From Macrostomum lignano (taxonomy: Eukaryota): a stretch of 64,000 bases of DNA. Of the stretch, positions 15,991-19,776 are shown one piece after another. The notes below the pieces were generated by a model, which saw only the letters and a list, made by a program, of their open reading frames with translations, was not told the DNA's origin and did no database searches. The position numbers and the translations under genes were made by a program. Position 1 is the first letter of the stretch. Every line of letters begins with the position of its first letter. The stretch is taken from assembly GCA_002269645.1 (NCBI GenBank), contig NIVC01001567.1:62001-126000 (forward strand). Reading direction: 5' to 3'.

Positions 15991-16365
15991 AGGTCGAAGT
16001 CGATGGCACCATCTGCTGAAGCGACAGTCTATCCTTTTGTTAATTAATTATTACATTATTAATTTAAATTTTCACCTGCTATTAGCAGCAGAAGATCATA
16101 TCATATCATTTGAATGAATACATGTGTTTGTTTAACTATTGTTTTAATTTTTTAAACATCAATTTTCAGTTGTTAGAAATGTCTAATAGTTCGGCAAATT
16201 TATTCACGCAGTTTCGTATCATCCTACACTCAAAGTCAAAGAGATTTTTTAAGATTTCAAGGCTACATGTAGCTTATTAAAAAAACGTGTATTGCTTTTC
16301 TTTGGCTCCCCAACGGGGGGCGTAGATTGCTAGTTATATCTCAATATCTCCCCAATATCTCAATA

Positions 16366-16587
16366 TTACAAATAGGGTTCACAACGGGCAGCTTTGTTGG
16401 CAGCCCAGTGGGTCAGGCCCGAGCAGGCACGTTGGAGATGGTACCCATGGTTACAGCTGGGGCATTCGAGGAACCTGCCGCGGAGAGTCTTTCCGCAGTG
16501 GTGATGGTTGTAGTTTCGGTGAGATCCAGGATTGGTTTCGACATCGCCGGCCCTACACAGCAGCATCTTGGGAAGGTAGTGGGCCAC
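16366..16587 (-). CDS. ORF2 N-terminus: 2A-like ribosome-skipping motif followed by a PHD-like finger
   Basis: GDVETNPG-S at 16548-16522, where TCT is one transition from the canonical CCT (Pro), followed by a Cys/His-rich finger. Confidence 0.7.
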   Translation of the reverse strand: MAHYLPKMLLCRAGDVETNPGSHRNYNHHHCGKTLRGRFLECPSCNHGYHLQRACSGLTHWAANKAARCEPYL

Positions 16588-17959
16588 CTCGCTACCCTAC
16601 CCATCGGAGAAAACGTGGCAGGGTTGCCGCTGACTGTTGGTATAACTAGCCGATGGGACACTGGGTGTCCGAATTTCCGGCGCTCTTCGACACCTGTTGG
16701 ATTGTGTACCTCCCCTCCGCGACGTAGACGCGGCGCCGAGTAGGAGCTGGAGCCGCGGGTCCAGGCCGTCCGTAAAGGCCGACGGGTGCTGCTGCTGTTG
16801 TCATTGGCACTGCTGCTGGAGCAACCGGCATCGTCGCCGCTGCTGCTGGTGCAGCTGCTGCAGAGGCTGCTGCCAGTTGCAGCTTCTTGGGCACCAGCTT
16901 GGAAGGCTGCGGCGCGCTGAGCTGCTAGGCTGTGCTTTTCGATGGCAACTTTACAGTTCCTGTTATTGGCACGGTGAGCTTCACCACAATTCGCACATTT
17001 TGCCGTCTCCGGCTTGGGGCACTCCTGCCAGCGGTGCGCTGCCGCGCAGATATTGCAGTGGGTGGCGGCTCGACACTTATTAGCGCCGTGGCCTAAGCGC
17101 TGGCAGTTACGGCACTGGAGAGCCCTCGCCGGAGTTACTGGGCTCGCAGGCGTATCTGGTTAACTGCGATACAATGCCCGTGGCGAGGCAGGCATCGGCT
17201 GTGGCCTTATTGGGTAGGAAAATTCTTATTAACTACGTAGGCATATTTCTGGATTTAGACGTAATGCGACTCGCTGAGATGACTTTGAGTCCCACATCCT
17301 TCCGCAGATGTTGCAAAAACTTTGATCTTAACTGGCACACCCGAACGACAATGGAATGCACCGTTTGGACCGGTTGGTGCCGATTTGCGGGTCGATTCGT
17401 TGGCCTGGCGTGCGGTAGTCGTCTGCTGACTGGTACGCCATTGAAGTTGGGCTCTCGCAGAGGGCCACGCAAGAAAACCTGATGGTCCCCAGGTGTCGCG
17501 GGGAACACCAGATATCCATTGTCGAATTGCATAGGCCTTGTGACAGTTGCTCTGGCGTTGCCTTGACAATTAGAGGCCAGCCACTTTAAGAAATTTATTT
17601 GGTTATTATTATTGCAGGTCTCGCCGTCGAAGGTGGAAACCACCGGCACGACGTTCTGACGGCCTGCTGTTGTACTATTGGCATTTGTCCTAGCAGCTGA
17701 CGCATAAGAGCGCCCTAGATCGTCGCGACGTTGGCCAGTACTACCGCGCCCCGCACCGACGTTGCCGCCGCCGTACCGGACGCGGAAACTGCTAGGCGCT
17801 GCAGGACCGGGCGCGCCGGCCGTCTCCCTGTTTCCTGGTTGCCCCGGGTTGCCACGCTCGACCGGAGGCCCGGCGCGGCCATGCCCATGCCCGTCGTGTA
17901 CAACTGCCGTCGTTGTTGGGCCTCCGCGCCCCAGCGTGCCAGTGCCAGGTGGATGCGTC

Positions 17960-18460
17960 ATACTTAAGGTGAGCGAGATTCCGACGCCATCCTGGACACC
18001 GATAGCTCGGACACTGTGTTGGCACTTTCGTTGGCATGCACCTGCCATAATGATCACGGACCCAGGCTCAGTGCTAAACCGCGCGATAACCCTTTGATCG
18101 TCATTGCGCACGAATCTCCGTACAGCGCCAAGAGAAACAGTGGCAATGTACGGGTCAACCCCGAGCTCGGGTTTGTCATCGGCGTGGTAGGAAATTTTAT
18201 CATCGCCGGTCTCATAAAATTTGATGAGGCACGAATTGAATTTGGGCATGCCGAGGTCTGCGTTAAACTCCAAGAAGTCTCGCAGGTCCTCGACAGTGCT
18301 ATACATCATTGGACTGTAGCGGTACACCTGAGTACGAGTAGCTGGGACCGTACCAAATCACCCTGCGCTGCTCGTGGGGCTTATGCCTAACGGCCTTCGG
18401 TAGAAGGTCGGTGATAAGGCGGTCGTACAGGTCTTGTGCTGCCGACTCTAGCACCTTGGG
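17960..18460 (-). CDS. AlkB-family (ALKBH2/3-like) 2OG-Fe(II) dioxygenase domain within ORF1
   Basis: HxD (H 18186-18184, D 18180-18178) and the distal His of HSV (18018-18016) are present, as is the WYG-x-YSYSG motif. The C-terminal RxxxxxR appears as GISLTLS, so the Arg residues are missing in this copy. Confidence 0.85.
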
Positions 18461-18800
18461 GTAGTACTCAAAAACTTATGTCATCGTAATGCTGGATATT
18501 TTCACCGGACTTATCCCGGTGCGTTGGGAAACCAATTAGACTGATTGTAGTCGGCTGCGTCCTTGTCAGCCTCCATATTGACAGCATTGTTGGCCTCGCT
18601 TTCAGATCTTTCAGACTGAGCGCTCGGCGGATGCCACAGCACTGGGGGCTTCGGCCAAGCCGGCTCCTTCCAGTACCGTGGCAGAGCCGCTGGACGCTGA
18701 GACATCTGAGTCAGCTGGAATCTCAATTACAGTTGGTGGATCAGTGGCAGCCGGGTTCGAAAGCACCGGTGAGCCGGGGACCGAAGAGTAGTCAGACCCT

Positions 18801-19776
18801 GGAGTCAAGGTACTAGGCTCAAGCGGCGGCATCGTCTTGTTCGAAGGACCAATAGATGAGCGTCGCTTCTGGGCCGGAGGCATGGATGTACGGCTTGTCG
18901 TGTCTCTACGAGCTACTAAGTGGTGACGGCCGTTGCACTAGACACCATCTTGCTTGACCAGTCTGAGGACTGTGTAGTATTGGGTTTTTTACTCGGCAGC
19001 TCTGCTAAGCAGATCCTCGTACTTAGTACTCGCGCCACAACAGGCGGTTTGGCGGTTTAGCGCTGCTGATTTGTTCGACGATCGGGCAGAGTGCGGTCGA
19101 CGTTGAATGGAGTGGCCGGCCGGAAACCGTGCTGCCGGTTCTGGAGATGTAGGTCACGACTAAGGACAGGTAGGAGCACTTTCATGGGGCGGTATGAGGC
19201 GCCATCGTTTGGACTGCCCCGCATTCTCCTTTCCATCTCCCCACTCTCCCTCTCACTGCCCGCATCCTCCCCACTCTCCATCTTACTGTCCGCATCCTCC
19301 CTAGCCACCTTACTGTCAGCCATGGACACGTTTTTGTATTTGTATTCCCGTTTTTATCTTTCTTATTGAGATCAAATTTAGAGGTCATAGTTATTATAAA
19401 TATTACATTAACTCGCGGCAAGACAAAGAGCGTCATTCCTATGGTTTAGCTTTTCCTCTAGCAAGCAGCTTTCTTTTGATACTAAATGAAGTAGCAGGCA
19501 ACCTAAATTAATGGCGCAACGGACTAGGGACTGATTCTTTTCACTAGCTATCTCTGTTTTTACTTCAAAATTCTACTTCAAAAAAAAATATTTTATATAA
19601 AATTCTTGAAGGGTCGTCTTAAAAGTGTCGAAAAGGTAAAAACTAAACTACTTTTCATCCGATTGTCCAGCCAGAGAAGTCATCGGTATTCTTACTTAAA
19701 TGTCAGAGAAGTGTTTGCATTATGAAGTCGGTAAAGTGTCACCCTCAGGTATACAATCGACTGTCGGTGACATTAA
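18801..19776 (-). repeat. Right arm of the ~975-bp inverted repeat
   Basis: Reverse complement of 10389-11362. It ends GTCGGTGACA-TTAA at 19776. Confidence 0.95.

Follow-up and report, generated by a model that had tools for sequence, protein, structure and literature searches.

A decayed LINE copy in Macrostomum lignano points to a retrotransposon family with a predicted AlkB demethylase domain in its ORF1 protein

Can a retrotransposon carry a nucleic acid demethylase within its own RNA-binding protein? The question is raised by a locus of the flatworm Macrostomum lignano, located in a 64,000-nucleotide stretch of contig NIVC01001567.1 (positions 62,001 to 126,000, assembly GCA_002269645.1), which is referred to here as the window. 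The original prediction had read a frameshifted path from MPPAQKRR through an AlkB domain and CCHC zinc knuckles to a 2A-PHD segment. It interpreted this path as a long interspersed nuclear element (LINE) whose first open reading frame (ORF1) has an AlkB domain of the ALKBH2/3 type ahead of Gag-like zinc knuckles. Three-frame translation and motif mapping located every listed part on the minus strand: the ORF1 path starts at ATG 18883 and passes through the AlkB domain, a linker, two domains resembling RNA recognition motifs (RRMs) and three CCHC knuckles, and is followed on the same strand by a 2A-like peptide and a degenerate PHD remnant (Table 1). The prediction had been silent on the RRM-like domains and on an extension of the element in the 5′ direction to about 19776. 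We consider it likely that the locus is a decayed, 3′-truncated copy of a genuine non-long terminal repeat (LINE) family with an ORF1-encoded AlkB domain that would act on the element's RNA, and that the 2A-PHD piece is a fragment of another LINE.

The AlkB assignment does not depend on an intact copy. In a Pfam search, PF13532 (2OG-FeII_Oxy_2) was matched with 63.5 bits (cut-off, 31.2; E=4.1e-17), so that even this decayed sequence gives a match far beyond chance; in the relatives described below, E values for the same profile were 1e-27 to 1e-31. This match and the architecture of the relatives agree with the fusion proposed originally; the scores of the window copy for the Pfam zf-CCHC and PHD profiles stayed below their cut-offs. 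When a profile of the family was run against PDB sequences, human ALKBH3 was matched with E=1.7e-41 (145 bits), human ALKBH2 with E of about 1e-28 (103 bits) and E. coli AlkB with E of about 1e-6. The domain of the window copy was also modelled with AlphaFold2 (AF2), the family alignment serving as input (pLDDT 86, pTM 0.85), and the model was compared with the PDB by Foldseek. The best match was ALKBH3 bound to single-stranded DNA (ssDNA), with a TM score of 0.81, and scores of about 0.75 and 0.68 were obtained for human ALKBH2 and E. coli AlkB. By sequence and predicted fold, the domain is of the ALKBH2/3 type and closest to human ALKBH3. Against the family profile, the scores of free-standing bacterial AlkB proteins were about equal to those of vertebrate ALKBH3. 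In a word-index search, the whole frame-corrected ORF1 gave no match, probably because its low-complexity linker filled the limit of 8000 candidates. When the query was reduced to the AlkB domain or replaced by the family alignment, this search yielded only one family protein (P0001) and free-standing, mostly bacterial AlkB proteins, and missed the ORF1 relatives.

These relatives were detected when 1.84 billion representative sequences were searched exhaustively by phmmer with the frame-corrected ORF1. Diverged proteins (31-35% identity) aligned in one stretch from the AlkB domain through the RRMs to the last knuckle, namely P0030 (757 aa, 35% identity), P0031 (962 aa) and P0032 (843 aa). Both parts were also aligned, in separate stretches, in P0034 and P0040, and closer, partial relatives were P0033, P0035, P0036, P0039 and P0001, the last being 69% identical to the window copy by BLASTP. 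The AlkB domain is thus carried by other copies as well: several lineages, with 31-69% identity to the window copy, encode the fusion within a single ORF and with its parts in unchanged order. These alignments indicate that the architecture is recurrent and not a one-off chimera. A cluster look-up added further M. lignano members (PAA54533.1, PAA61448.1, A0A1I8G3B4, A0A1I8JCX4 and A0A1I8GKP7). The M. lignano members had been deposited as 'hypothetical protein', 'Fe2OG dioxygenase domain-containing protein' and, in one case, 'HTH La-type RNA-binding domain-containing protein'. At least three mutually diverged lineages of AlkB-bearing LINEs are present in this species, including the one nearest to the window copy (P0001, P0036).

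Other parts of the protein are shared too. K/R-rich disordered N-termini precede the AlkB domain in relatives, and a linker of comparable kind follows it in P0001, P0035 and P0036. The region between linker and knuckles had no Pfam match; in the window copy it is 47-50% identical to that of M. lignano P0036. An AF2 model of this region, built from seven family sequences (mean pLDDT 65), contained two beta-alpha-beta-beta-alpha-beta units, and its best Foldseek matches in the PDB were the tandem-RRM proteins HuR, IMP3 and hnRNP A1 (probability about 1, E about 2e-4). The evidence for an RRM-RRM-3xCCHC arrangement of the predicted ORF1 protein (ORF1p) is therefore good but not conclusive. The knuckles of the window copy align column for column with those of P0030, P0031, P0032, P0034, P0039 and a second M. 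lignano locus (L008), and from their spacing and this alignment three CCHC knuckles are clear. Intact relatives share, in addition, a C-terminal helix module behind the knuckles.

Linkage to a reverse transcriptase (RT), which the original prediction reported as missing from the window copy, was found in its relatives. An apurinic/apyrimidinic endonuclease (APE)-RT ORF2 lies downstream of the AlkB ORF1 in L006 and L008, and an APE ORF follows it in L001 and L005. The ORF2 proteins are 926-948 aa long; no RNase H domain was detected in them with Pfam, and no C-terminal knuckle was seen on reading their sequences. The contig that bears L008, NIVC01002892.1, belongs to the same assembly as the window, and NIVC00000000 is the M. 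lignano genome (PMC5730564). A second tandem copy at L008 is 99.7% identical to the first, which we count in support of recent activity. No poly(A) tail or target-site duplication was identified for the AlkB LINE copies inspected. At L008 9666-9781 (plus strand), U5 snRNA is matched over its full length (83.8 bits; gathering score, 40). This match and the 5′ edge of the tandem unit overlap, and homology between the two copies begins at 9714, inside U5. Possible explanations include a U5-LINE chimera formed by template switching, an snRNA gene as target site, or recruitment of U5 into the 5′-untranslated region (5′-UTR).

The window copy is a non-functional, 3′-truncated pseudogene, because it contains stops and frameshifts, has both 2-oxoglutarate (2OG)-binding Arg residues replaced and is followed by neither an endonuclease nor an RT. 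At least four frameshifts and three in-frame stops (18478-18476, 18301-18299 and 17235-17233) were counted. Two of the frameshifts are needed to pass from the N-terminus to the AlkB domain, via an other-frame segment at 18624-18511, and the stop at 18301-18299, after which a frameshift follows, occupies a Trp codon of the relatives. The HxD motif and the second His were retained, whereas the Arg pair reads GISLTLS instead of the R-I-S-L-T-F-R of relatives; both caveats attached to the original prediction, the missing RT and the lost Arg residues, are therefore true of this copy. Neither APE nor RT was found on the minus strand after 16366, where nothing coding follows, and tblastn with family ORF2s matched only unrelated LINEs of the window, at 28-33 kb. 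Homology to the family proteins ends at about 16947 (tblastn alignments stop at 16926-16947); a hidden Markov model of the C-terminal helix module had no match in window positions 9000-21000, and blastn of eight related loci (L001-L008) against the window detected no shared DNA. Downstream of the 2A-PHD fragment, the DNA is AT-rich and non-coding up to a tandem-repeat block (15500-15980; diverged, with 70-76% self-identity at offsets of about 120-250 bp), on the far side of which lies an APE ORF on the plus strand.

Does the 2A-PHD piece belong to the AlkB element, as proposed originally when it was described as an ORF2 start? The window motif reads DVETNPG-S, not the canonical NPG-P, and the PHD finger, in which the first Cys pair is missing, reached 12.1 bits against a cut-off of 24 (PF00628, E=0.21). 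A metagenome scan with the 76-residue piece yielded three loci (L011-L013) with 34-43% identity, in which the homologous 2A motif is the canonical DVETNPG-P. A single ORF of L011 and L012 comprises a leader, DVETNPGP, a PHD finger above the Pfam cut-off (26.8 and 31.1 bits, respectively) and the start of an APE domain. In some LINEs, therefore, the APE ORF does begin with a 2A-PHD module, as the original prediction had supposed.

The piece could accordingly be read as the element's own ORF2 start, the element then having an AlkB-RRM-CCHC ORF1 with a 2A peptide and a PHD-APE-RT ORF2 directly behind it; ribosome skipping at the 2A peptide would set the two proteins apart. It lies on the same strand about 390 bp past the last knuckle, where ORF2 begins in relatives, and in L011 and L012 it forms the N-terminus of an APE-containing ORF. 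Modules of LINE ORF1 and ORF2 are also said to be shuffled (Metcalfe and Casane are credited with this observation, from 2014). We nevertheless regard this reading as unlikely, since 2A and PHD are without counterpart in L001, L005, L006 and L008, where the C-terminal helix module of ORF1 runs straight into APE; this module is absent from the window copy. No DxExNPG motif and nothing similar to the window 2A-PHD piece was detected in L001-L010. Moreover, the 2A core is preceded by a stop at a distance of 11 codons, and its frame is not that of the knuckles. The 2A-PHD-APE ORF of L011 directly follows the tail of an ORF2 with RNase H and zf-RVT, an arrangement that suggests tandem copies; LINEs bearing 2A-PHD (L011-L013) lack AlkB, and AlkB LINEs lack RNase H. 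These comparisons make it rather probable that the window joins the 5′ part of an AlkB LINE to the 5′ part of another LINE. An RNA-to-RNA template switch at the 5′ end, or a rearrangement, would yield this order, and later 3′ loss would account for the truncation.

Outside the window copy, the predicted catalytic residues are preserved. In the AlkB alignment (A1), H105, D107 and R127 are invariant and the second His (H161) is nearly so; HxD...H is intact in relatives, and R-x-(N/S)-L-T-F-R, the RxxxxxR motif, was present in 8/8 relatives reaching the C-terminal strand, the G...S form being found only in the window copy. Because every relative that reaches this region has the motif, its loss appears private to the window copy and explained by the decay of that single copy. 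All three observations named with the original prediction as refuting it (other copies lacking AlkB, no linkage to an RT and a degenerate catalytic site) were thus answered in its favour by the relatives. Selection was assessed by the Nei-Gojobori method in the one lineage pair with DNA, L001/L005, whose proteins P0030/P0031 share 58% amino-acid identity; exact-protein look-ups yielded no contig for P0001, P0036, P0040 or P0043. The nonsynonymous rate (dN) was 0.238 for the AlkB domain, 0.225 for the knuckles, 0.294 for the RRMs and 0.705 for the linker, the fastest-evolving part. The AlkB domain is, by this measure, as constrained as the core nucleic-acid-binding parts, a ranking that is clear even though the ratios are rough. 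At the level of substitutions, the catalytic residues and the AlkB domain as a whole are shown to be under purifying selection.

We also detected AlkB domains in elements of another class. In a neighbour-joining tree of 45 AlkB cores, the LINE domains and one Penelope-type domain (P0041) formed a clade (bootstrap 89/100), and the sampled eukaryotic ALKBH3 sequences formed a separate one (bootstrap 83/100). In locus L010 (1805-7083), AlkB is encoded in an ORF of up to 1012 aa, and the ORF behind it has RT motifs of the Penelope-like element (PLE) type and a GIY-YIG endonuclease; the assignment to this type is based on reading the sequence by eye and on DUF8422 and HTH_animal Pfam matches. In L009 (2851-7148), an 883-aa ORF (P0170) combines AlkB with a weak GDSL-esterase match and is preceded by the end of a GIY-YIG ORF and followed by an RVT_1 ORF without APE. 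The domain thus apparently occurs also in ORF1 of Penelope-like elements.

How would such a protein act? The family ORF1p would consist of a basic disordered N-terminus, an ALKBH3-like AlkB domain, a linker, two RRM-like domains, three CCHC knuckles and a C-terminal helical module, with APE-RT encoded by a separate ORF2. It would coat the element's own RNA in cis and thereby tether the AlkB domain to it. The tethered enzyme would oxidatively strip 1-methyladenine (m1A) and 3-methylcytosine (m3C or 3mC) from the single-stranded template RNA, and ssDNA intermediates may be substrates as well. These two methylated bases block reverse transcriptases, and their removal would protect cDNA synthesis and hence retrotransposition. 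It has been reported that base modifications hinder cDNA synthesis and that AlkB treatment relieves such stops in tRNA sequencing (PMC12140624). Repair or demethylation of the element's own RNA by the AlkB domain is plausible.

A serious rival, to which we assign a rather low probability, places the activity on DNA. The domain would then remove 3mC produced by off-target activity of DNA methyltransferases (DNMTs) on heavily methylated transposon DNA, or lesions in single-stranded target DNA or cDNA during target-primed reverse transcription. ALKB2/3 repair 3mC, DNMTs make it, and M. lignano keeps both DNMT1 and DNMT3 (PMC9246332); the top structural matches of the domain are ALKBH3-ssDNA complexes. 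However, RRM and CCHC modules of the ORF1p type bind the element's RNA, so that a tethered enzyme would be nearest to RNA. ALKBH3 prefers single strands and is active on RNA, ALKBH2 being an enzyme of double-stranded DNA, and the profile fits ALKBH3 better (145 vs 103 bits).

It is still less probable, and in our view doubtful, that the domain is an epitranscriptomic effector with another target, such as N6-methyladenosine (m6A) on the element's RNA or host tRNAs and mRNAs, or a non-catalytic nucleic-acid-binding module. An AlkB protein of orchid Gypsy elements is an m6A demethylase (PMC9289625), and m6A modulates L1 activity in mammals (PMC7873242). The domain described here, however, groups with ALKBH3/ALKBH2 and bacterial AlkB, not with ALKBH5 or FTO: no ALKBH5 was found among the PDB sequence matches, and FTO appeared at rank 50 of the fold search. 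The strict conservation of the Fe(II) and 2OG ligands argues against the non-catalytic version. Finally, that a host ALKBH pseudogene fragment came to lie beside a LINE ORF1 fragment once only, as a region composed of broken repeats and broken ribosomal DNA (rDNA) and a copy full of frameshifts might suggest, was rejected as most improbable given the recurrence of the fusion, in the same order and one ORF, in lineages 31-69% identical to the window copy and next to APE-RT ORFs.

Several points weigh against our preferred interpretation, a decayed AlkB LINE whose enzyme acts on the element's RNA, with a foreign 2A-PHD piece. Being a dead copy, the one in the window is silent on activity, and only the resemblance to ALKBH3 suggests a substrate for the domain (RNA or DNA; m1A/m3C or other). 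Because dS is saturated at about 1.7-2.1 in the sole DNA pair, the dN/dS values (about 0.11 for AlkB) are approximate. Sampling of the tree was thin, with neither flatworm host ALKBH nor ALKBH2 included, so that it points to no particular donor of the AlkB domain. With regard to the foreign fragment, the presence of a 2A-PHD piece on the same strand at the expected start of ORF2 has to be accepted as coincidence, and the relatives compared over the 3′ part are not close to the window subfamily.

Table 1. Coordinates of the AlkB element in the window and of the related loci used for comparison
Feature	Sequence	Coordinates	Strand	Remarks
Putative 5′-UTR, 893 bp	Window	18884-19776	-	Outer limit given only by the end of homology to the inverted duplicate
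ORF1 start and basic/disordered N-terminus (MPPAQKRRSS...)	Window	18611-18883	-	Stop at 18613-18611
AlkB (2OG/Fe(II) dioxygenase) domain, ALKBH3-like, disrupted	Window	17947-18475	-	PF13532
AlkB motif VIWYGPSYSYSG	Window	18361-18326	-	
AlkB motif KFNSCLIKFY	Window	18243-18214	-	
HxD in SYHADD	Window	18192-18175	-	
Second His in CQHSV	Window	18024-18010	-	
GISLTLS at 2OG-binding site	Window	17982-17962	-	
Gly/Pro/Arg-rich low-complexity linker, AlkB to RRMs	Window	17656-17946	-	
Two RRM-like domains (beta-alpha-beta-beta-alpha-beta twice)	Window	17137-17655	-	In-frame stop 17235-17233
Three CCHC zinc knuckles	Window	16953-17114 (17114-17073, 17057-17019, 16997-16953)	-	Reached via a frameshift near 17107-17121
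Low-complexity stretch after knuckles	Window	16597-16952	-	Probable truncation/junction zone
2A-like peptide LLCRAGDVETNPGS (LLCRAGDVETNPG-S)	Window	16522-16563	-	Final Pro replaced by Ser
Degenerate PHD remnant and stop	Window	16366-16500	-	Cys/His cluster 16500-16423; stop 16368-16366
ORF1 (AlkB)	L006 (9.1 kb, Logan)	1752-4283		
ORF2, 948 aa	L006	4710-7556		Exo_endo_phos_2 + RVT_1
ORF1	L008 (M. lignano NIVC01002892.1)	10001-12705		Frameshifted
ORF2, 926 aa	L008	12792-15572		APE + RVT_1
ORF1 stop and APE ORF start	L001			...TGA A ATG; APE ORF begins one base past the stop
ORF1 stop and APE ORF start	L005			...TAG ATG; APE ORF begins immediately past the stop
LINE fragment with leader of about 100 residues, 2A, one or two PHD fingers	L011	1136-2251		
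LINE fragment, same type	L012	1349-2305		
LINE fragment, same type	L013	207-365		

The only further copy of the AlkB element in the window is a duplicate of its 5′ end. By blastn, 18801-19776 on the minus strand matches 10389-11362 on the plus strand with 99.4% identity over 976 bp. The duplicate covers the 5′-UTR and the first 28 codons of ORF1, whose residues 1-28 were matched at 100% by tblastn at 11280-11363, and breaks off at 11362. About 7.4 kb separate the arms of this inverted duplication, which may have originated by rearrangement, as twin copies or as an assembly artefact. The end of this match sets the provisional 5′ limit of the element at 19776. The putative 5′-UTR contains no long ORF upstream of ATG 18883. 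Position 19776 lies about 170 bp from a truncated 18S rRNA gene fragment.

An APE-domain ORF (Exo_endo_phos_2) with a long insertion within the domain lies at 13913-15495 on the plus strand, opposite to the AlkB element; ahead of it, in a different frame, are a poly-Q/P tract and a peptide ending in LRLRGG, as does ubiquitin. Its part at 14386-15495 was considered as ORF2 of the AlkB element and rejected, given its opposite strand and an identity of only about 31% to the L008 APE over about 100 residues; it was not matched by the L011 and L012 ORFs either. The LRLRGG tail was likewise rejected as a ubiquitin-like cleavage module, there being no Pfam ubiquitin match even at E<=1.

On the other side of the element, a broken rDNA unit (19949-31405, plus strand) has been invaded by other retroelements. 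It includes a 5′-truncated 18S fragment (19949-20612; model positions 623-1113), a second 18S match (24194-24918), 5.8S (25590-25743) and 28S (26059-31405, about 5.3 kb being spanned for a 3.4-kb model). Between both 18S matches, a LINE (21098-24177, plus strand) carries an N-terminal C2H2-type zinc-finger ORF without Pfam match, RT-like ORFs and a C-terminal ORF (23692-24177) in which CCHC and a 'KPDL...D' restriction-like endonuclease tail were read by eye; its sequence resembles that of an R2-superfamily element that has inserted into 18S rDNA. A 568-aa ORF (28174-29880, plus strand) matches RVT_1, and at its C-terminus a CCHC/'RPDL...D' region of the restriction-like endonuclease type was read by eye; being located inside the 28S match, this ORF probably represents an R2-like insertion. 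Another LINE RT (31370-33788) begins at the 3′ edge of that match. Further along, two ORFs of 798 and 874 aa (38396-43355, plus strand), in which CCHC knuckle, RT, RNase H and integrase regions were read by eye, look like gag-pol of a Ty3/Gypsy-type long terminal repeat (LTR) retrotransposon, and two divergent ORFs without Pfam match (308 aa, minus strand, and 191 aa, plus strand) occupy 44015-45547.

LINE ORF1 proteins are usually viewed as RNA chaperones or packaging proteins. A conserved, selected demethylase or repair domain in ORF1p would add a functional class that is new to LINEs and, via L009 and L010, to Penelope-like elements. It would have parallels in plant RNA viruses and in orchid Gypsy elements, which captured AlkB independently, and suggests that methyl lesions or marks carried by the template RNA are of consequence to reverse-transcribing parasites. 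We tentatively put forward, as a possibility that we hold to be somewhat less than even, that AlkB-ORF1 is a counter-defence or self-repair module of retroelements in flatworms and other invertebrates. It would strip RT-blocking m1A and m3C, arising as damage or host marks, and would have been long kept and exchanged between LINEs and Penelope-like elements. If true, methylation of the Watson-Crick face of bases would be a real constraint, and possibly a host restriction mechanism, on animal retrotransposition. The idea is directly testable, as intact ORF1 sequences are available in L001, L005 and L006, and M. lignano has transgenesis (PMC5730564).

There is also a consequence for genome annotation. 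LINE ORF1 entries of UniProt and GenBank named 'Fe2OG dioxygenase domain-containing protein' or 'hypothetical protein' could pass for host ALKBH genes in presence/absence surveys. M. lignano has been stated to retain ALKB2 (PMC9246332); in principle, transposon copies (PAA54533.1, PAA61448.1, A0A1I8JCX4 and A0A1I8GKP7) could mislead surveys that score host ALKB2/3 as present here.

Compared with known systems, the family combines familiar parts in a different way. ORF1 proteins with RRMs and CCHC knuckles reportedly occur in I factor, Jockey, R1 and related clades (described, it is said, by Khazina and Weichenrieder in 2009). The present family resembles them in having tandem RRM-like domains and then three CCHC knuckles upstream of an APE-RT ORF2, and differs by an AlkB domain of about 190 residues N-terminal to the RRMs and by the C-terminal helix module. 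Human ALKBH3 and ALKBH2 and bacterial AlkB share their fold and their Fe(II)/2OG ligands with the element's version, but each is a repair protein of its host that stands alone, with about 200-290 aa, whereas the element's version is a domain of a transposon RNA-binding protein. In plant RNA viruses (Flexiviridae, Closteroviridae), AlkB domains are said to be part of the replicase polyproteins, a report attributed to van den Born and colleagues (2008). There too, a selfish RNA-templated replicator has an AlkB domain presumed or shown to clear m1A/m3C; the viral domain lies inside the replicase, whereas here an animal retrotransposon has it inside a Gag-like ORF1 protein. LINEs of the APE type that contain 2A are likewise reported to exist (Odon and colleagues, 2013, by repute). 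Like these, the window copy has a DVExNPG(P) motif upstream of LINE-encoded domains, and L011-L013 show the order leader-2A-PHD-APE; the window motif, by contrast, has lost the essential final Pro and is absent from the other AlkB LINEs examined.

Enzymatic accessory domains in ORF1 proteins have a precedent. Esterase and PHD domains are said to have been recognised in CR1/L2-type ORF1 proteins by Kapitonov and Jurka in 2003. Such SGNH/GDSL esterase and PHD domains have been described in these proteins (PMC3905857). The CR1/L2 esterase is also an enzymatic accessory of LINE ORF1p, and the AlkB-bearing P0170 of L009 has a GDSL-like region as well, but the former is a lipid/ester hydrolase and the domain reported here a nucleic-acid dioxygenase. 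To our knowledge, that esterase is the only enzymatic accessory known in LINE ORF1p. No description of AlkB in ORF1 of a LINE or PLE was found in the literature, Repbase Reports and Dfam curation being outside the search. Among retrotransposons, orchid Ty3/Gypsy elements encode a paALKBH5-like protein that bound RNA and acted as a demethylase in vitro (PMC9289625). They share with the present family that an AlkB-family protein is encoded by a retrotransposon, and are distinguished by being LTR elements of one plant genus, with an additional ORF, an ALKBH5-clade protein and m6A as target (PMC9289625). Here, LINEs (and Penelope-like elements) of animals carry an ALKBH3-like domain that is fused into ORF1p itself.

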